Below are positions 2,500 through 36,800 of a DNA stretch of 54,242 nt, piece after piece; the first letter of the stretch is position 1; each line of letters opens with the position of its first letter. Source of the DNA: Klebsormidium nitens (lineage: Eukaryota > Plantae > Klebsormidiophyceae); contig DF237542.1 in the NCBI GenBank assembly GCA_000708835.1, positions 1-54,242 of the forward strand. The letters run 5' to 3'. The notes under the pieces are model-generated. The model was not told the origin of the DNA. It saw only the letters and a list, made by a program, of their open reading frames with translations, and searched no databases. The translations under genes were made by a program, and so were the position numbers.

Positions 2500-4790
2500 T
2501 GAATGCTGCATCCGTCCCTGAACGGGACCCCAAATACTACGCAATGCACCAGCACATAGAGCTCCGCGATAGCGGTCTATACGGGCTGGGTCTTTTTGCC
2601 ACGGCTGCAATCAAGGAAGGGGAGGTGATCTGGAACGACGACACATACAAGTGAGAAAACCTGTGTGGGCTTCGTGTGGTCTCTTCTTTCAGTTTCAGTG
2701 GCAGTAGATCTGTAAGGAATTTGCTGTTTTCGCACTCAAGCTGAGGCCTTATCCGGCGTTCTACAATGGATCGGTGTTGGACAATGACGAGGCAGATACC
2801 AAAAGCATAACCTGGTCTCTCGGGCCGTCTTAGACGCTCTGTATCCACATCGACACATGATCAGGAGGTGACTGCCAAGAGATGGGCCATGCAAGTGTGA
2901 TTGGGCGCAATTGTGCGCACAAGAGAACGATGCAATTTTCTCAAAACCTTGATAAAAGCTGCGTGGTTCAGGGCCCTCTAGAATCTGACTGCATTCAGTA
3001 GGTGACTGACTCAATAATGGGCCTGAACTTTTGACGCACTTTCCTCGGAGGCTTGCTCAGGCGGTATGCTCCCCTTGTGCAGAAAAGCTGTTGAGACCTT
3101 TTTGTTCCCTCGATGACCGCTAGTCGAGAGCGCTCAAAGCTTCCGTTCCTAGGATGCAGTGCGGACAAGTACCTGCATTCTTCTGCAGACATCAAGTCCT
3201 AGCCCTTGGAACGCCAGCAGATTTGTACACACAACAGACTCAAAGTTGGCCCCAAGTTTTGCACTCTCCTCTAGAAGCTTGCTCGTAGAGGGCTGATCGA
3301 TCAGTCCCGTTCTACGATGCAGCGCGGACAAGTACCTGCATACCGTCACGGAGATAAAGTCGTGGCCCCTTGACCGCCAGCGCGAGTTCATGCACTACTG
3401 TTACCAAGTCGAAGAGGTGACGTTTTCGGGGATGACGAGCTTGGAGATGGTCCAAAGCGAAGTGTCGAACTACATGAACCACAGCTGTGATCCGACCTAC
3501 TGGTAAGCGCCCAGATGTGGCAGACTGAGTGGACCGGTATTGTATCCGAAGCTTCGCTCGTTCGATTCGTTCTGTTCTGTTTCTACTTTTCTGGTTCCAG
3601 TACGGACAATATCGTAAATTCAGCTGTTGCGCACCTACTTCAATCCTCTTTTCTAGTTGCCACGTGGTCAAGTTTGCTGCTTGTGAATCGGAAAAGAGAG
3701 CTCACCCTGTGCGGTGCAGTCAAAGATGATTGCCTTGGTTGAAGGGTAAAGTGGGTGGAACTAGTACAAACTTCTACCAACGATGATATGTATCTTAGAG
3801 CAATCCATTCCGAAGCACATGAGGTTCTCGCGACGTTTCAAGAAAAACACTTGCAGTCGAACTCCGGAGAATCATCTATGATAACGGACCAGTCAATCGC
3901 GTCGAGAGAATGGCAGCAAACAACCAAGTTGCACCGTGCTTTGCTCCGCACTGCGAAGGGTGCACAAGCTTCTTGCTGTGATTCACCAAATCACACGAGC
4001 CATTCCCATCTCTTAGGTTTCTCACAGAGGACCCCGCTCGCATGCTCGCGCGGCGCAACATCAAGGCCGGAGAGCAGATCACGTACGACTACGCCACGTC
4101 CGAGACAACGGACTTCCGGTGAGAACCAGGGATCAACCGGGACATTTGATTTTCGATTCTGCGCTTGCTTAGAGGTGCTTGAATATACTCAAAGAGCGTC
4201 CTCGTGGGAATCGGACACCTGGCAACCTGGGTTCAAGCGCGAAACGGGTGCCTTTTGTCGGAAATGCTTCTTGTTCTGTAGCCAGCACTGGCAGTTTGCA
4301 AGGATGACTCTTTCTCAAGTTCCAAGGTTTCGGACTTTCAGAAACCACTTTGAGCAGGCCTTGGGATAAGCCGAGCTTTTCAAAACGCAGCAAAATTGCA
4401 AGTGAGTCCGATCCAGCCCGAATACGATCCCGTAAACGTTTCAGTGCAGGAGTCATTTTGATTGCCGCTAGCTATGCGGGCTCATCTTTTGCAGCGACCT
4501 CGAAGCGGGTAACGCCGCCTCAAAGCTGCCGCGACGATCTGCCCACACTGCGGCCATCTTTCACTTACCCAAAACAGCCTCATCGTCAAACCAAGCATAA
4601 ACTCATCTCCGTGCTTGTCTCTGCAGGCTGGAATTCGTGCCTCTGTGGCTCCGAAAACTGCCGTGGCAAGCTGTCGGGCAGCGATTATCAGCGGCCGGAC
4701 GTCCAGAAACGCTATCAGGGCCACTTCATGCCGCACGTCCAACGCCTTATAAAACGCGGCGCGGCCGCGGGGAAAGAAGACAAAGTTTGA
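2500..4790 (+). CDS. Small SET + post-SET domain protein (putative lysine methyltransferase). 5' end unresolved; last exon appears frameshifted
   Basis: Exons ~2500-2650 (IELRDSGLYGLGLFATAAIKEGEVIW), 3323-3502 (..VSNYMNHSCDPTYW), 4017-4118 (FLTEDPARMLARRNIKAGEQITYDYATSE) and 4627-4790 (CLCGSENCRG..RYQGHFMPHVQRLI). These give the SET motifs GxGLFA, NHSCDP and EITYDY plus the post-SET CxCGSxxCRG. Introns are GT-AG. Confidence 0.85.
3141..3235 (+). pseudogene. Decayed tandem duplicate of the 5' part of SET exon 2 (pseudo-exon)
   Basis: ttccgttcctaggatgcag|tgcggacaagtacctgcat resembles tcccgttctacgatgcag|cgcggacaagtacctgcat (3305 onward). It translates as ADKYLHSSADIKS*PLERQ versus ADKYLHTVTEIKSWPLDRQ, with TAG at 3200-3202 replacing TGG. 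Confidence 0.8.
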
Positions 4791-27381: not shown

Positions 27382-27503
27382 TTTGAAAGGTGCCAGATCT
27401 TAAGCAGCTCCCGGCAACGAATGCTGAACCAAACCCTCCCTACTCTCGAACACCTACCTACGGTACAAAGAGCTGAAGGCAAACTCCCCAGACCTGCGCC
27501 ACT

Positions 27504-28129
27504 NNNNNNNNNNNNNNNNNNNNNNNNNNNNNNNNNNNNNNNNNNNNNNNNNNNNNNNNNNNNNNNNNNNNNNNNNNNNNNNNNNNNNNNNNNNNNNNNN
27601 NNNNNNNNNNNNNNNNNNNNNNNNNNNNNNNNNNNNNNNNNNNNNNNNNNNNNNNNNNNNNNNNNNNNNNNNNNNNNNNNNNNNNNNNNNNNNNNNNNNN
27701 NNNNNNNNNNNNNNNNNNNNNNNNNNNNNNNNNNNNNNNNNNNNNNNNNNNNNNNNNNNNNNNNNNNNNNNNNNNNNNNNNNNNNNNNNNNNNNNNNNNN
27801 NNNNNNNNNNNNNNNNNNNNNNNNNNNNNNNNNNNNNNNNNNNNNNNNNNNNNNNNNNNNNNNNNNNNNNNNNNNNNNNNNNNNNNNNNNNNNNNNNNNN
27901 NNNNNNNNNNNNNNNNNNNNNNNNNNNNNNNNNNNNNNNNNNNNNNNNNNNNNNNNNNNNNNNNNNNNNNNNNNNNNNNNNNNNNNNNNNNNNNNNNNNN
28001 NNNNNNNNNNNNNNNNNNNNNNNNNNNNNNNNNNNNNNNNNNNNNNNNNNNNNNNNNNNNNNNNNNNNNNNNNNNNNNNNNNNNNNNNNNNNNNNNNNNN
28101 NNNNNNNNNNNNNNNNNNNNNNNNNNNNN
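27504..28129. other. Assembly gap (626 N) in the divergent COX7c-like/LTA4H promoter
   Basis: Run of N. Confidence 1.
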
Positions 28130-28516
28130 TAGAAGGCTGCTGCCCTCGACTGCCAGCGAGGTTCGCAGCAAGCGCGTCTCCTAGAAAGCGCCCTGTGCTC
28201 TAATGGCCTTTTCACACTGCACTGGTGCTCCCCGTTCTCTGTTTCTCATGAGTCATGGTCCTGACCGGGTCTCGGACTTGCAGGACCTTTCTTGAGATCA
28301 GACCGGTACACGTGAGTGTGAAGTCTCCGAAATTTAACCACACTGACTCGATCTGTCAAATTGCACGTTCAACTTCACAGTCTGCAGAATCTGATCAGCT
28401 GCCGAAGCTCTCCCTTGAGCCTGAGGTCCGCATTGCATGCCGTCTTCTCTTGTTCTCCTATCGCCCTTGAGCTGCGCAGCAATAATTCCGTCTGTGGTTG
28501 CAAGAGAGTGCCCACG

Positions 28517-31500
28517 ATGGGCTTCATTGATCCACATTCCTTTGCGGATGTGGACCAGCCGCTGGTCAAGTCGGTGGCCCTGGAGCTCCGCCTAGATTTT
28601 GACAGCAAGACCATCAACGCGACCGCAGACTACGTCCTCAAGAGTGCAGCCAGCGGCACCCTCGACTTTGACACGCGTGACCTCGGTGTGGAAGCAGTCA
28701 CGGGGGAGGGGGGCGAGAGTGTGGCCTTTGACACGGACCACAAGGATGCCATCAAAGGACAGCGCCTGCGGATGCACCTCCACGGTACAGTGGCCCTGCC
28801 CATCCGCATTTCATAACCTGCCTGGCTTTGCCTCCCTCTCTCGCAGCTGGCGCTCAACAGTGGACTCTGAACATGCAGCCCAGGCCTGAGCAGGGCACCA
28901 CGGTGTGCCCGTGCGCGCTGATCATTTGTCAGCATAGCACTGAAGGTCAGTCAATTGGCAGATCTTCCCGCTCAATGGATCCCCTGATACCAATGGGGAA
29001 AGTGCTGACGGACTTTCTTGCCTGCTGCCAGGTTCCCGGCTGTTCATCCGCTACCGCATCCCCCCCTCCGCCAGTGCGCTGCAGTGGCTGGAGCCGGCGA
29101 TGACAGCGGGCGGCAAGCTTCCGTTCGTTTTCACACAGTGCCAGCCCATCCACGCGCGCTCCCTGTTCCCCTGCCAAGACACCCCCGCAGCCCGCATCTC
29201 ATACGCGGCCAGGGTGGAGGTGAGGCTGCGCAAGGGCCCGGCCCTCTTCCTCCGCCCGTACAAGCCGGGGGGGTTGTGCGGGAACCCCTGACAATGAGGC
29301 CGTGGTGAAAAGGACGCATGCATAAGGTGGCACGCTTGTCCTTTCAAATTGGCCTCTCACGCGGTCCAATCACAGATGTAGGTCAATATATCTTGCTTCG
29401 AAGGCTTCTTAGAAACCCAATTGATCAGTCAGTACGCCAGTACTGCTGTGTTAGGAAGGACCCAAGGCAAATTCTCACTATCTAAATTCCGGAGCGCTAG
29501 GCTGTTAGGTATGGGGCCCCGAAGATGTTCACTGGATTGCATCACATGTACATTGCTGGTTTCATGTCCTGTCACTAGGTGTTGCGGACGGACAATCTCT
29601 CACAACTCATGGTACCCAATGTCAGGTCCCAAAGGAGCTGCACGTGGTGATGTCAGCCGTGCACCTGGGGCGGGAGGAGAGGGGCGCCACTGCGTTTGAG
29701 GTGTTTGCCACGGAGGAGCCCATCCCTCCGTACCTCTTTGCATTTGCGGCGGGCGAGCTGCAGCGCCAGGACCTCGGCCCGCGCTCCGCAGTGTACGCTG
29801 AGCCCAGCATGCTGCAGGCGGCCGCGCGCGAGTTTGAGGTGAGGCCCACACGGCTCCGTGTGACATGCGCGGGCCAACTTCAGAATCTCGAATCCTTTTA
29901 GGACGCTCTGGACACTTTGGAGGATTTGCGGCGGACGTCCGGGTTTCGTAACCCGGACTGCAACCATCAGCTTTTCTCGTCCCCAACATTTCTTCTGCCC
30001 GGCTGTGCGCAGGACGTGGAGGCCATGATCAGCGCAGCGGAGGCCCTGTTCGGGCCATACAAGTGGGGCCGCTTTGACATGCTGCTGATGCCGCCCTCGT
30101 TCCCGTACGGCGGCATGGAGAACCCGCGCATGGCCTTCATGACGCCCACGCTCATCACAGGCGACAAGTCGCTCGTCAACGTTGTGAGCTGCCGGCCACC
30201 GCGTGGCATACTGCAGGACGAGCCGATCGAAGGTTCCCTGATTTGGCTTCCTATGCACGACAAATCAACTTTCAACTGCGCTTTGATGCCAGTCCGCACT
30301 CTTCCTTGAGCAACTTTTCCTGGTTAGTCATCTACTATTTCGCCTTCCTAAAGGGTCCCTCAGGCAAGCTCTCTTCCACACCTCCGGCGGCCGTCGCCTG
30401 GTCTCACGCTCGCCGCTGGCTGCAGGTGGCGCACGAGCTGGCGCACAGCTGGACGGGCAACCTGGTGACCAACGCCACCATGGACCACTTCTGGCTCAAC
30501 GAGGGCTTCACCGTCTACGCAGAGCGCCGCATCCTCGAGGCCACCGAAGTGAGGCTGCAGTGCCCGAGGCGTCTGCTCGTCTTCTCTTGGATGCACCAGT
30601 TGCGTGATCTGTTCGTTGCTTTTCTGCGAGTCCAGTCAAAGTTATTATCCAACCGCGGCTGTCACGACCTCTGCCCGTTCCCGTGCAGGGCCCCGAGCGC
30701 GTTGCGTTCCACGCCGCCATTGGCTACGCGGGCCTGCTCGAGGAGCTCGAACGCTTCGGGCCCGACTCCGAGTACACCAAGCTGCGCATGAACCTCGAGG
30801 GTGAGCTGGGACCCTCTTCGCCGTGGCATTGCATGCTGCCGGGCGCTCCAGATTGTCATGCCGGCAGGTGGAACTCCTGGCACCGCAGCGGCAGTACAAA
30901 GAACGGGCCACTGCTTTCCTGCACCCTGTTCTGCCCTGACGCTCCTTGTTTTGTTGGGTGGCCCCTCCCCCAGGCGTGGACCCCGACTCGGTGTTTTCGC
31001 GCGTGCCGTACGAGAAGGGCCAGCTGCTGCTCCGCGCGCTCGAGCAGGCCGTGGGCCGCCCCGCGTTTGACGCGTTCCTCCAGGTGTGTCCCCTGCGCCG
31101 CAGCTCAGCTCCCTTTCCTCTGCTGTGCGTCCAGGCGTGGACCCGGACGACGTCTTCTCGGACGTCCCCTACGAGAAGGGCTTCCTCTTCCTGCGCCACC
31201 TCGAGACCGCCGTTGGGCGCCCCGCCTTCGACGCCTTCCTTCAGGTGACCCCTGCGGCCGCCACCATGCAGGATGGGCAAATCGGAAGCAGCCATTGCCC
31301 CACGGGGCTTCCGCTTTGTCTGCTGGGGCTTCTCACCATCGTCCAGCCTGTTCTCATCCTGTTTCCCCGCGCTGCGCAGGCCTACATCGCGCACTTCCAG
31401 TTCCAGTCCATCGACACCGCCACCTTCCTGGCCTTTCTCCACGCGCGCCTGCCCGGCTTGCCCCCCTCGCTGGACCTGCCCGCCTGGATCGACGCCCCGG

Positions 31501-32733
31501 GCCTCCCATCCAACGCGCCCGTGCCGCGCTCCGCCGCTCTCGACAAAGTCAAAAGCCTGGCCGCGGCGTTCCCCAGCGGGGCGCGCCTCTCGGAGGAGGA
31601 CCACCGCGGCTGGCAGGTATTTTCGTGCAGCGCCACCCAGCCTTGCGTTCTCTGCTCGGTGCTGTCTACCCTGCGCCCTGGCCGACTGCGCAGCCCAAAC
31701 AAAGAGAGCGCTTCTGTGAACACTTTTTGGTTGCTTCCCGCTGCTCTTCTGTTGTGCCGAACTGGTGCGGTACCAATGTGTCGTTGCGGCTGCCCTAGGT
31801 CCAGCTGATTGTTTGGCATCCTCAACGTACCTGTGCTGCATGGCTGTTCGTTACGGATGGGGCAGCAAAGCTGGTCGAGTCAATTCCGTCGTCAGCCGCC
31901 AACGACCGCCCTCGAGCTCCCACTTGTTTTTGACGGCGGCCCGCATGTCTTCCCCCGCCCCTGCCTGCCCGCACTGCTCCGTCGGCTATTCATGAAGCGG
32001 CCCCCCTGTTGCCCCCTTCGCGCTGCCCGGCTGACCGCTGTGCTGCCCGCGCTGCCCCGCAGTACCTGGAGTGGCAGACGTTCCTGGACGCGCTGCCCAA
32101 GCGGCTGCCCGCGGCGGACGTGGCGTGGCTGGAAGACCACTTCCAGCTGGCGGCCGCGCCCAACCCCGAGATCCGGATCACCTTCCTCGTCATCGCCGCA
32201 CACTCCGACTACCAGCCCGCCTTCCCCGCCATCCACGAGGCGCTGCTCACCCTGGGTAAGCGCCGGGCACGCGTTCCTATGCGTCCGCCCCTCGGGTCAC
32301 GCAATTCGGGGGAGACGGGCAGAGTTCATGTAGCAGCAGTACCGCAGCTGCAGAATCGTGTCATTGTTCAGAGGGAGCACTCGCGTGTGTTTCGCTCCAG
32401 CTGGATATCCTGCCTCGGCTTCTTGAAGCCGGCTCGGATGAATTCGGCTAACTTTCGCACGAACTGTTTCTGGTGCCGTTGCCGGCTGTCTTGCTACTCC
32501 CGGAAAGCAGATGTGGTCCGAATGAACAGCGACGCGCCCATAATCTGCAACTGGACGGGTTGGCGCGTGCAGGGCGCATGAAGTACCTGAAGCCACTGTA
32601 CGCTGGCCTGCTTGCGGGGTCGCCGGACGGCCACGCCCTGGCCAGCCGCACTTTTGCCACCGCGGCCCCCAAGTACCACCCCATTGCGCGCACGGTCATC
32701 CAGGGCCTCCTGGACAAGGCTGCCACAAGGTGA
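28517..32733 (+). CDS. LTA4H: Leukotriene A4 hydrolase-like M1 zinc aminopeptidase, ~591 aa, with a duplicated exon 7
   Basis: Exons 28517-28784, 29032-29219, 29626-29838, 30013-30183, 30426-30548, 30689-30800, [30974-31083 or 31135-31244], 31380-31616, 32063-32255, 32573-32733. Motifs: [41 protein letters not shown] (HEXXH-18-E), PYEKG and [10 protein letters not shown]. Confidence 0.96.
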
Positions 32734-33800
32734 CAGCCAGATGGTGGGCGCGGCGCAACAGCTTGCCGGGGGCCAGCGGGCATCGCGGAGGCACAAGCCG
32801 CCTCCCAACGGCGTGGATTAACGATTGAGGGCCTAGGGTCAGCCAAGAAAAACAATTGTCAATAAAAAGGCATGTGGAGGTCATGCCACCGGTTTGGAGC
32901 AGGCTTATGACGAGACCTTCATTACCCGTTGTTATGGCACGCTATTAGTTGGTCGTCCGATGATTGGCCCAATGTGGTCAGATACTCCAGGCAGAGGCCA
33001 AAATTTGACCAATGCCTGAGGCGCGGCTCACAGGCCGCGAGGAAGCTTCTCTGTGTCGTTGGGCCGGTGCACTGATTCGAACGAGCCTGCACATATGGCC
33101 AGAGCTTAGAGCTGCCGCCGGCCATGGGCATGGCGGATATCGTATAAGGCTTGATTGAATACGTTGCCTGTAATCATTGCACTCATATGTACTCCAGTAG
33201 ATAGTCAATAAATTGCATGTAGGCTGCACGCCATGGTCAGGCCGTTTGACCATGTAAGTTCACGACTGATGCATAGCCCTAAACCTCATGGATCATCAAT
33301 GCACAAGAACAGCTTCTCGATAGAGGGTATGGTGCATCACGTTCATGTCTTGACAAAGACGAGCATAGCGGTGCTGACCAGATTGTATCCAATGCAATGG
33401 AATAGCTGCACAGTTGATGACCTTTCAAGTCGACCATGGTCAAGCAACCTGCCGCCCATTGGCGCTTTCTTCCGGCAGCCACCGTTTGGTACAGTATGAA
33501 TCGTATACCTTGATCTGATGCACCTACGTGTTGCATTATACAGACGCTTGTACTTGCGTTTTTCTAGCATACCTATACCTGCTATCTTTGATGGATGCAA
33601 GCACAAACCCCGGTGGTTCTCCAACTCGGCGAGCAACATTGCTCGGTCAAATCAGTGGCGCAGAGCGCAAGAGCAAGCCCCTAAGTTTGACGACCTCAGT
33701 CGAGCCTGCCGGAAGAGAGGGCAATGGGCCCTTCCTTTCTAGCTGCGCGCCTCAGGTGGCGGACCTTCCCCTCCAGCCCGAATGTCCCTCTGCGAGCTGG

Positions 33801-36800
33801 CTATCCCTGCTGGTCCACGAAGTCCTGCAGCGTCAAGTTGCGCGCGGGCTGCCGCAGCTTGCGCAGCGCCTGCGCCTCCACCTGCCGGATGCGCTCGCGA
33901 GTGACCTGAAACACGCACACAATCGCGACACCAGGTCAAAAACTCAAACCGAGGCAGTTGATGATGGACTAGGTCAAGAGACTGTCCCCCTGGGCTGGGC
34001 TACTTTAGGCTGAGGGAACAGAGGGGTGTATAGCCAGCTCTGCCTCCAGCAATGAGCATGCAAGCGCAAGCGCACTCTGAACCACTCCCATGTCCGTCAG
34101 GCAGCACATCCAAAGTAGATTCTGAGATGGACCTCAAAAAACCATGATTCCAAAGGGCGAATGCACACCTGCTGTTTGTGTGCTCGAGACAGTTTCATAA
34201 TAGCTGCACAGGCTCAGAAACCACTCATACATAGTGTCTGTATCTTCTGCACCTCTCAAAAAGTCTTACCACTCCTTTCCCCTCATCCGGTCAGCGATAG
34301 GGCAAACCTTTCGCCCTTAAAGTACTAGTGAGGGCAATGTGATGCTTAAACAACACAACTACTCAACAACCAGGAACGGCAGCGTATCGAGGAACAGCAG
34401 CATGAGGTCCTCGAGCCGCTCTGCTGTGTTGGGCGGGGGGCTGACCTGGAAGATGTTGCCAATCTCCTCGAGGGAGCGGACCTTGGCCCCGTTCAGGCCG
34501 TAGCGCATGGCGATGATGTCGCGCTCCTTGGGGTTCAGCGTGTGCAGCACGTTCATCATCGCCACGTTGACTGCCTGCGCCGTCTTCACATCCTCCACAC
34601 TCTCCTCGTCCGCCACCACCAGCGAGTCCTGCATGCCCAACCCGTGCCTGCACGTCAGCAACAATCCGGGAACCACTCTGGCTGCATGGCCATGGATGCA
34701 TCCAGCGGGCACTGCTGTCTGTTGCGAACTTGGCCCCTGTCCTCTCATCCAAGCTGTAGTCTGTCAGCCGCAGTGTGGCAGGTCTCAGCTGAGCCCTACG
34801 TGCGTTGGTTGCGCGGGCTCACAATGAGTTTCCTGCCGGGTTGGTCCTCGTTGCCGGCCTCCCTGTCGGTGGACATGATGGGCTTGTTGACCTGCAGGCA
34901 CAGCGTGACCTTCTCCACGGGCAGCCCGCACAGCGCGGCAATCTCGGCTGCAGTGGCTGGCCGCCCCAATTGGTCAACCAGCAGCCGCTTGGCGCGGTAC
35001 ACCTTCGTGATCGCCTCGTACATGTGCACCTGCACCAGAGTACGCCCGCTCAGCACCACCGCAAGAGGGGGGCTGCGGCAAGGGCCAGCGTAGCACAGCA
35101 CTACAGTGGGTCAGAGCAACCCTTTCAAGGTTGCAAGCACAACACTGGGCTTGGCAGCAGGTGCACAGGCACAAAGGAGGGCGAGTAAGGCGTACCGGTA
35201 ACCGGATGGTGCGCGAGTTTTCTGCAACAGCGCGCGTGATGGCCTGCCGGATCCACCAGTGCGCGTATGTGGAGAAGCGGAACCCCTTGGTGTGGTCGTA
35301 CTTCTCTACACCCTTGATCAGGCCCAGGTTGCCCTCCTGTGGACACAGAGGAAAGACAGGTCTCGCGCTCAACTCCTTGCAACAGGCGGCAATTCTGGTA
35401 GCAGAGCAGCAAGCACAGCGCCGCAGACGCACTGCAGCTGCTACTCTTGTCCAGCCCAGCACACAGCCAACCACTGGCAGCTCGTTGTTGGTGGCTGGGC
35501 CGCGAGAGTGCTCACCTGCACAAGGTCCGTGAAGTCCATGTTGCGGCCGACGTACTTCTTGGCGACGGAGACCACCAGGCGCAGGTTGGAGCGCACCATG
35601 AGGTCCTTGGCCTGGTCGCCCAGCGCCCACTTCTCGCGCAGCAGCGTGGGCGACATCCCCAGGCTCTCCGCCAGCTCGTCCAGCCCCACGGGCCGCCCCG
35701 CTTCCGCGGCCAGCACCTCGCGCACGCGCTCCCACTCAATCTTCTCCTTGATGCACGTCGCGCACTCCAGCTCCTCCTTGGGCGTCAGCAGCTTCGCCGA
35801 CCCCGCGTTCACCAGCATCTGCCCCACGCTGTCCTCCACAAACACCTCGCGTGTCCCCGCCCCCCCGCCCCGCTCCTTCCACCGCACCCGCATCGCCGCC
35901 CGCTCCGCTCGCCGCCGCCGCCGCTGCTCCGTGCGACTCTCCGGCTCCGCCACTGCACCCATCGCCCCTTTGATGGAAGCCTTTTTACGAACCCTAGGCT
36001 CTGGTGCCTCCGAATGTTGCACCGTTTTGATCCTTGCCCCTGCTAGACTATCATCATCCACCTGCTTTTCGCGAGGCTTCTTTTTGGGCGCCTTCCGCTT
36101 GGCTGCCGGCCGCAGCTTGCCCGCCTGGCGCTCCCGCTCCCCGCCCCGCCGCTCCCCGCTGGGGCCCGCTGCCCCGCCCCGCCCTGCAGCTTCCTGCTTC
36201 CTGGCCTCCTCCAGCAGCAGGTAGTCCTCGGGGGTGAGAAAGTCGGTATAGCGCGCCTTCTGGGAAAAGGTCTTGGCCTCCTCCTCCAGAGCCACCCGCT
36301 CCGCCTCCACAATCTTGGACGCTTCCGCACTTTTCATAGCTGCTTGCGCCAGAGAGTTGATCTGCACAAAAAGGCACTGGCGCGCATGATGGGTGGTGTC
36401 CAACAGCTGAATCCTGAGTCGGACCATCGGGCAGGTTGAGGGCAATCAAGGGATACCGATGCGCCAGCACTGCCGAGTGGTGCATTCATGCCGGGGCTGC
36501 TCGGGGTGCAGTGGGGGTGGCTGACCTGGGACAGGGTGCGCACAAGGTCCAGCTCCTTCTGCGCCTCTGCGTCATCAAAAAGATGCCCGCGGTACTCCTC
36601 CTCTGTAAACGTGTCAGCATGCCCGCTGGTACTTGTGCTGCTCTCCAGGGTGCCCTCTAGAGCGCGGGCGTGCCACGGCAGCGGCCCCGCCTCCAGGCTG
36701 TCTGCTGCGGAACTAGGGATAGTGGTAGGGGCGCCCACAGCAACAGCCATTGGCCGGTAGTCATGCATAGAGCAACCCTTTCTAGAGCTGGCAAGTAACC

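Follow-up and report, generated by a model that had tools for sequence, protein, structure and literature searches.

A duplicated exon bearing the catalytic tyrosine of an LTA4H-like aminopeptidase gene is very probably used as a mutually exclusive pair in Klebsormidium nitens

Tandemly duplicated exons that are used in a mutually exclusive manner represent a well-described kind of gene organization (reviewed in PMC9013439, PMC6071210 and PMC9741552); in animals, according to PMC9741552, substitutions of tandem-duplicated exons are rare, old and highly expressed. Here we describe an arrangement of this kind from a 54,242-nucleotide stretch of DNA of Klebsormidium nitens (contig DF237542.1, hereafter the window, meaning the whole stretch analysed), in which a gene of the M1/LTA4H type encoding an aminopeptidase carries two adjacent homologous exons, 7a and 7b. 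Like this gene, the animal genes OGDH (exons 4a/4b) and ATE1 (with its own exons 7a/7b) give rise to two enzymes by means of mutually exclusive homologous exons. The branch-point geometry of OGDH, as presented in PMC7969005, is the same as that proposed below for the intron between the two algal copies, whereas ATE1 relies on competing RNA structures (PMC7797038), of which a simple search found none at the algal gene. Both mechanism and function have been proven experimentally in the animal cases, while the algal pair is known from sequence and assembled RNA.

A described case from the green lineage is the cyclophilin gene cyn23 of Volvox carteri, whose exons 4 and 5 are adjacent, mutually exclusive (as verified by reverse transcription polymerase chain reaction) and both 106 nt long, that is, not a multiple of three; the cyn23 isoforms are equal in size and differ at 13 residues, and one exon enters each mRNA, as with 7a and 7b (PMC4378016). 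The Volvox case differs in concerning another gene family and a chlorophyte host, rather than a (probably) streptophyte alga, and the passages on it in PMC4378016 report no link to a catalytic residue, no conservation across species and no estimate of selection. Our survey of the literature found no description of mutually exclusive exons for the LTA4H-clade gene family or for Klebsormidium. The original prediction, which had been made from the DNA letters alone, likewise knew of no description in LTA4H of algae or plants; the kind itself is already documented in the green lineage by Volvox cyn23 (PMC4378016).

We consider it highly probable that the algal gene underwent an ancient tandem duplication of the exon encoding the Asp-Pro-Asp loop, the catalytic Tyr and the following helix, and that splicing selects the resulting copies in a mutually exclusive manner. 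The parts of the gene directly concerned are as follows (E denotes exon; residues are numbered within the exon 7 segment).

30689-30800, + strand: E6, constitutive, upstream of the 7a/7b pair, ending in phase 1 (GAG G/GT)
30974-31083, + strand: exon 7a, 110 nt, the derived copy, with Ser6, Arg10, Gln17, Leu19, Ala22 and Gln25
31084-31134, + strand: intron between the copies, 51 nt, the shortest of the gene, with a branch-point-like CTCAG at 31104-31108
31135-31244, + strand: exon 7b, 110 nt, the ancestral-like copy, with Asp6, Asp10, Phe17, Phe19, His22 and Thr25
31380-31616, + strand: E8, constitutive, downstream of the 7a/7b pair

Both copies are preceded by CAG and followed by GT, with the 51-nt intron between them, and both begin in phase 1 and end in phase 0; being adjacent and homologous, equal in length and phase and equipped with splice sites of their own, they constitute a tandem-duplicated exon pair. 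A repeat finder reported the region as a single 117-nt direct repeat (30970-31086 and 31131-31247, 75% identity), the sole such repeat in the gene. Within the exons proper, 81 of the 110 bases match (73.6%). Such agreement would arise by chance with a probability of about 2e-24, which becomes about 2e-17 when corrected for all position pairs in the gene. The 29 differing bases are distributed over the three codon positions as 6, 5 and 18, and the Nei-Gojobori procedure counts 16.25 synonymous and 12.75 non-synonymous differences; the original prediction, which spoke of about a dozen synonymous differences besides the six replacements, had put the number of differing bases too low. Its coordinates, splice sites, phases and peptides of the two 110-nt exons are, by contrast, all correct on our reading of the sequence. 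When the carried-over last base of E6 (30800) is included, each copy comprises 37 codons without a stop, and 31 of the 37 residues are identical, so that our translation agrees with the prediction also in the six differences, namely (7a/7b) S/D at position 6, R/D at 10, Q/F at 17, L/F at 19, A/H at 22 and Q/T at 25, with the catalytic Tyr at position 13. The Pfam profile Peptidase_M1 is matched by the two copies at identical profile positions (149-183) and with scores of 27.0 bits for 7a and 27.2 bits for 7b. Either 7a or 7b alone gives an open frame of 591 codons, whereas joining both copies, or neither, shifts the frame because 110 is not divisible by three, a consequence already foreseen in the prediction and upheld by the exon model.

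A search of sequencing runs returned 23 runs from nine studies, all in the form of assembler contigs, and four of them, from four studies (X1, X5, X8 and X12), were compared with positions 30400-31700 of the window. These runs had been labelled as RNA by guess, which the spliced joints in them confirm, and the depths given below are flat word depths. The contigs of all four runs are more than 99% alike to the window and carry no differing letters, and such exact agreement is found in runs filed under two organism labels. The joints 30548>30689, 30800>30974 and 31083>31380 are present in all four, 31244>31380 was seen in X1, X8 and X12, and 30800>31135 in two contig records, one of X12 (record 9) and one of X8 (record 19). 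Each of these two records runs from 30781-30799 to 31134-31241 and on to 31377-31406, and hence documents, within a single contig of 157 nt, the path E6>7b>E8; the corresponding 7a contigs are records 10 and 20. Paired 157-nt contigs with common E6 and E8 ends, carrying either 7a or 7b, occur in X1, X8 and X12, and in the same three runs the contig of E5 and E6 extends nine loose letters beyond E6, exactly to the point at which 7a and 7b diverge, these nine letters being the shared start of the two exons. X5 has a single 459-nt contig of E6, 7a and E8 with a depth of 127 and no path through 7b, so 7b is absent from this run or minor in it. None of the contigs in the four runs has 7a spliced to 7b, reads through the 51-nt intron or passes directly from E6 to E8, although contigs can hide rare forms.

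Contig depths of the two copies in the four runs were the following.

X1: 187 for 7a and 300 for 7b, 7a share 38%
X8: 31 for 7a and 87 for 7b, 7a share 26%
X12: 43 for 7a and 102 for 7b, 7a share 30%
X5: 127 for 7a, no 7b assembled, 7a share about 100%

In X1, X8 and X12 the depths of 7a and 7b add up to about that of the flanking exons or exceed it moderately, and 7b is the major form, while X5 has 7a nearly alone. In each mature mRNA detected, E6 is thus followed by one of the two copies and this copy by E8, both isoforms are abundant, and their ratio varies among the data sets. One gene accordingly yields two enzymes of 591 residues that are identical save for six positions. Among the five junctions that the original prediction proposed to count (30800>30974, 30800>31135, 31083>31380, 31244>31380 and 31083>31135), the contigs contain the first four and lack the last, and its claim of mutually exclusive use is thereby borne out in assembled RNA by contigs of both the E6>7a>E8 and the E6>7b>E8 type. 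The splicing in of only one exon, which would have spoken against it had it been general, is seen in X5 but not in X1, X8 and X12, and no contig of the four runs contains both exons.

The same contigs provide some observations on the neighbouring introns. In X5, the run without 7b, a 199-nt contig covers unspliced E5, intron 5 and E6 (30520-30718) at a depth of 69.6, compared with 49.1 for the spliced joint; retention of intron 5 (30549-30688), which shifts the frame, is thus substantial in this run, while the other three contain the spliced form only. Contigs of low depth extending from E8 into intron 9 (31587-31700; 46 versus 432 in X1 and 4.2 versus 127 in X5) point to a slight retention of that intron.

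A library search with the stop-free frame running through 7b, the following intron and E8 recovered two close open reading frame fragments from relatives, the contigs of which were examined, and a search with the E6 part of the stop-free frame recovered one fragment, from a third species. A 9.7-kb contig of a related species from a separate sequencing project (L001) carries the complete gene, its exon lengths and splice sites matching those of the window. Compared with the window, its exons are 85-97% and its introns 50-68% identical, and the whole coding sequences show a synonymous divergence (dS) of 0.29 and an amino-acid identity of 93%. L001 holds the same exon pair, with 7a at 2994-3103, an intron of 61 nt and 7b at 3165-3274. 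The orthologous exons of the two species are 96.4% (7a) and 94.5% (7b) identical, as opposed to 72-76% between 7a and 7b within or across the species, so the copies group by type and not by species. L001 preserves five of the six copy-specific differences and departs only at position 25, where its 7b has Ala and not Thr. Divergence estimates (dN, non-synonymous divergence) are given below.

7a versus 7b, window: dS 1.13, dN 0.17, dN/dS 0.15
7a versus 7b, L001: dS 0.92, dN 0.18, dN/dS 0.19
7a, window versus L001: dS 0.11, dN 0.012, dN/dS 0.11
7b, window versus L001: dS 0.22, dN 0.012, dN/dS 0.06

With dS of about 1.1 and dN/dS of 0.15 between the copies, the duplication is old and both copies are under purifying selection; the inter-copy dS values (1.13 and 0.92), set against those of the orthologous exons (0.11 and 0.22), make it several times as old as the divergence of the two species. 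Both copies are conserved as coding sequence in L001 (dN/dS 0.06-0.11 for the orthologues and 0.15 for the copies), and the comparative evidence thus shows an ancient tandem exon duplication in which purifying selection has kept both copies. The original prediction had likewise envisaged an old duplication with both copies preserved, and had suggested looking for the pair in related algae and calculating dN/dS; the pair is indeed found in L001, complete with copy-specific residues, and the ratio of 0.15 is not near 1. From the third, more distant species, one contig (L022) breaks off shortly behind an exon of the 7a type that has retained Ser6, Arg10 and Gln17, and another (L002) begins 327 nt before E8 and contains no exon 7, so this species is known for 7a only. 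A scan of metagenomes with E8 yielded 19 loci, intron-less and apparently bacterial, all of which encode the exon 7 segment once. Note also that E5 and E6 are fused in the third species (L022:1814-2155), where intron 5 is missing; the window and L001 both have this intron, which was gained or lost among close relatives.

The exon 7 segment was further compared in 243 homologues, comprising 120 angiosperm orthologues, the only proteins returned by a profile search led by a Musa protein, and 123 diverse representatives. All 120 angiosperm proteins are nearer to 7b than to 7a, as are 76 of the 123 representatives (23 are nearer to 7a and 24 tie). The angiosperm set has Phe at position 17 in 119 of 120 sequences, Phe at position 19 in all 120 and Asp at position 6 in 100. 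Since most homologues are nearer to 7b and Phe17 and Phe19 are near-invariant in angiosperms, 7b is the ancestral-like, plant-type copy and 7a the derived one, and 7b, keeping the plant-type residues, is probably the standard enzyme. Ser6 is rare (2/123 representatives, 1/120 angiosperms), and so is Gln17 (4/123 and 0/120), although the latter is also carried by the Colwellia cold-active aminopeptidase ColAP. The reversal of charge at position 10, on which the original prediction laid weight, does exist, but Arg10 is not unusual, occurring in 13 of the 123 diverse homologues and in 7 of the 120 angiosperm orthologues. The residues of 7a are therefore not exotic, as both Arg10 and Gln17 occur in single-copy homologues.

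By its sequence the gene belongs to the LTA4H clade of M1 zinc aminopeptidases, in agreement with the LTA4H-like M1 gene with a catalytic Tyr in the PYEKG motif that had been predicted. Its remaining exons, in addition to those listed above, are the following.

28517-32733, + strand: full extent of the coding region of this M1/LTA4H-type gene, 11 exons (E1-E6, 7a, 7b, E8-E10)
28517-28784, + strand: E1
29032-29219, + strand: E2
29626-29838, + strand: E3
30013-30183, + strand: E4, which holds GGMEN
30426-30548, + strand: E5, with the HExxH...E zinc-binding motif (HELAH...WLNEG) and a match to Pfam Peptidase_M1 (E 9.5e-16)
32063-32255, + strand: E9
32573-32733, + strand: E10

Every intron of this exon model is of the GT..AG type. 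Residues 1-587 of the protein align end to end with full-length homologues at 47-50% identity, including the Musa orthologue (47% over its full length), which is named leucine aminopeptidase, while the same family goes under the name leukotriene A-4 hydrolase homolog in other plants; among eukaryotes, land-plant proteins are its best relatives. With LTA4H (PDB 1HS6), ColAP (PDB 3CIA) and the plant LTA4H homologs the algal gene shares three Pfam domains, matched on separate exons, namely Peptidase_M1_N (PF17900), Peptidase_M1 (PF01433) and Leuk-A4-hydro_C (PF09127, on E9 and E10), and also GxMEN, HExxH-E and the catalytic Tyr. The set of M1 motifs is complete, with GxMEN (as GGMEN) in E4, HExxH-x18-E in E5 and the catalytic Tyr (PYEKG) in both 7a and 7b. 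The closest solved structures to the stretch from 7b to E8 are ColAP (3CIA) and the yeast and human LTA4H; part of E8 aligns to ColAP and yeast LTA4H right after the exon 7 segment, and the PYEKG Tyr of both copies aligns with the catalytic Tyr of the solved LTA4H and ColAP chains. Membership in the LTA4H clade is indicated by the Leuk-A4-hydro_C domain and by the closeness to LTA4H and ColAP. Roles have been described in LTA4H for Asp375, Tyr378 and Tyr383, and Tyr378 helps to shape the leukotriene product, that is, the triene geometry of leukotriene B4 (PMC8954237). The Asp of the DPD loop, aligned to LTA4H Asp375, is present in the algal protein, as are the Arg and Lys of GRMK, but unlike LTA4H both copies have Phe at the position aligned to Tyr378, so the combination of Tyr378 and Asp375 characteristic of the epoxide hydrolase is lacking. 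For this reason we treat the gene as one for an aminopeptidase and not for a leukotriene hydrolase.

The six differences were located on an AlphaFold model of the Musa orthologue, based on an alignment of 29 sequences (predicted local distance difference test, pLDDT, 93.5; predicted template modelling score, pTM, 0.91) and serving as a stand-in for the 7a and 7b isoforms; in Musa numbering, position n of the exon is residue 382+n, which makes the catalytic Tyr residue 395. In this model, positions 4-7 form a short helical turn that includes the DPD Asp and the S/D site at position 6, while position 10 (R/D) is in a loop just ahead of a 17-residue helix (residues 393-409) whose first turn contains the catalytic Tyr. 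This helix also carries positions 17, 19, 22 and 25, which are turned by 40, 240, 180 and 120 degrees, respectively, from the face of the Tyr, so that only position 17, one turn after it, shares that face. The loop lining the LTA4H pocket includes Asp375 and Tyr378 (PMC8954237), and positions 6 and 10 flank the segment that matches this loop. Compared with 7b, exon 7a has Ser and Arg where two Asp residues supply acidic side chains to the loop that precedes the Tyr, and it has Gln in place of the aromatic residue one helical turn past it. A search of the literature on the LTA4H positions aligned to the six differences (376, 380, 387, 389, 392 and 395) found nothing useful. As neither copy lacks a catalytic residue, the six changes would retune the enzyme and not act as an on/off switch. 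The two isoforms may thus differ in activity, the most likely effect of the 7a changes, judging from the model, being an altered preference for the N-terminal residue of the substrate or an altered positioning of the Tyr.

Exclusivity may be achieved by the shortness of the intron between the copies. The other introns of the gene measure 135-446 nt as against 51 nt, and those of L001 136-434 nt as against 61 nt. Most of the other introns have a motif of the CT[CG]AC type within about 45 nt of the acceptor, and the sole branch-point-like motif of the inter-copy intron is located 23 nt from the 7a donor in the window and 27 nt in L001 (there as CTCAC). Introns that are too short are a recognised cause of mutual exclusion in clusters of two exons (PMC6071210), and OGDH relies for it on branch points situated near the 5' splice site (PMC7969005). 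In view of these precedents and of the position of the only motif that could serve the 7b acceptor, we propose that joining of 7a to 7b would be sterically blocked, the U1 and U2 complexes being too crowded on the 51-nt intron. The frame rule would, in addition, render leaked forms non-functional. It would be a weak safeguard by itself, since the first stop of the form with both copies lies 9 nt, and that of the form lacking both 256 nt, past the last exon junction, where junction-dependent decay would not detect it. Intron 8 (31245-31379, + strand), which separates 7b from E8, is the best conserved intron of the window in the comparison with L001 (68% over aligned columns versus 50-62% for the others). 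It contains two blocks of 14 nt each, 31268-31281 and 31338-31351, that are identical in the window and L001 and are candidates for splicing regulatory elements or branch-point context.

It is conceivable, although quite unlikely, that one copy is the working exon and the other tolerated splicing noise, with isoforms that are functionally equivalent. All catalytic residues are indeed common to both copies, and the residues specific to 7a are found in single-copy homologues; however, both forms are abundant, 7a making up 26-38% in three runs and dominating the fourth, the inter-copy dN/dS is 0.15, and the copy-specific residues have been kept in L001 despite introns at 50-68% identity, with Ser6, Arg10 and Gln17 retained in the third species too. 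A silent pseudo-exon was rejected as an explanation, as both copies are used in RNA. The either/or pattern might alternatively arise mainly after splicing, if transcripts with both copies or neither were made and then removed by nonsense-mediated decay (NMD), a recognised contributor to mutual exclusion (PMC6071210), and the shift of frame in such transcripts, due to the length of 110 nt, would accord with this. We regard this as improbable, given that the stops of the form with both copies and of the skipped form are 9 and 256 nt past the last junction, none being premature upstream of a junction; no contigs of these forms were seen, though contigs drop rare forms. Because the stops fall in the last exon, classical NMD is unlikely to clear misjoined forms, and we rejected it as the main enforcer. 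That the two RNA forms stem from two genes or alleles, or that the tandem pair is an artefact of assembly, is hardly credible: beyond 157 nt the contigs do not tell from which molecule they derive, and there is an N gap just upstream of the gene, but the exons lie 51 nt apart here and 61 nt apart in the independent assembly of the L001 species, the RNA contigs match each exon without differing letters while those of E6 and E8 show no second variant, and copies differing at 26% of their bases do not represent a repeat that was collapsed or inflated. In view of the separate L001 assembly and of the RNA contigs, we rejected an assembly artefact.

Several points nevertheless weigh against an ancient exon pair that is strictly exclusive and functionally differentiated. 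Assembler contigs hide rare forms, so transcripts with both copies or with neither may exist at a low level, and the depth ratios are rough. The 7a-only state of X5 may reflect a difference between strains, or the assembler dropping a minor path, and not regulation. The steric block suggested by the sequence of the short intron would depend on the minimum workable intron length of the alga. A simple inverted-repeat search and the folding of introns in both species revealed no conserved competing RNA structure and no docking or selector sites. Finally, Arg10 and Gln17 are both encountered in homologues with a single copy of the segment.

As to the surroundings of the gene, a run of N at about 27500-28170 marks an assembly gap a few hundred bases upstream of the start codon (28517), because of which the promoter and 5' untranslated region may be incomplete in the assembly. 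The downstream neighbour (33476-35998, - strand) is a gene for a sigma-70-type factor, with a counterpart in the same order and orientation in L001 (5419-7941), where Pfam Sigma70_r3 and r4 were found on the called pieces. The window contains a second tandem pair, 3142-3218 and 3305-3381, with units of 77 nt that are 75% identical and 163 nt apart; the core of this pair is conserved and includes a short palindrome (ATGCAG...CTGCAT). It has stops in most frames and hence does not look like a pair of coding exons, and no Rfam match was found in the window.

Exons 7a and 7b might constitute a regulated switch that adjusts which substrates a conserved cytosolic aminopeptidase prefers, as one case of a lineage-wide use of either/or splicing of tandem exons to diversify the active sites of enzymes, in what would be the first member of the plant lineage to employ the animal-style mechanism widely; we put this forward as a tentative idea that may well prove wrong. 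In the plant lineage, to our knowledge, it is regarded as unusual for alternative splicing to give two functional enzymes instead of one functional and one defective form, and we know of few well-supported mutually exclusive exons there. The present case does not establish a new principle, but is a clean and well-supported instance in a lineage where such instances are rare, and it unites abundant isoforms, a pair kept in a second species, strong purifying selection and a swap of the catalytic Tyr together with the pocket loop. It also bears on annotation, as gene models that keep one copy are incomplete and those that join both encode a frame-shifted protein. For the M1 family, the pair represents a natural experiment in which the influence of six residues surrounding the catalytic Tyr on the tuning of an aminopeptidase can be studied.

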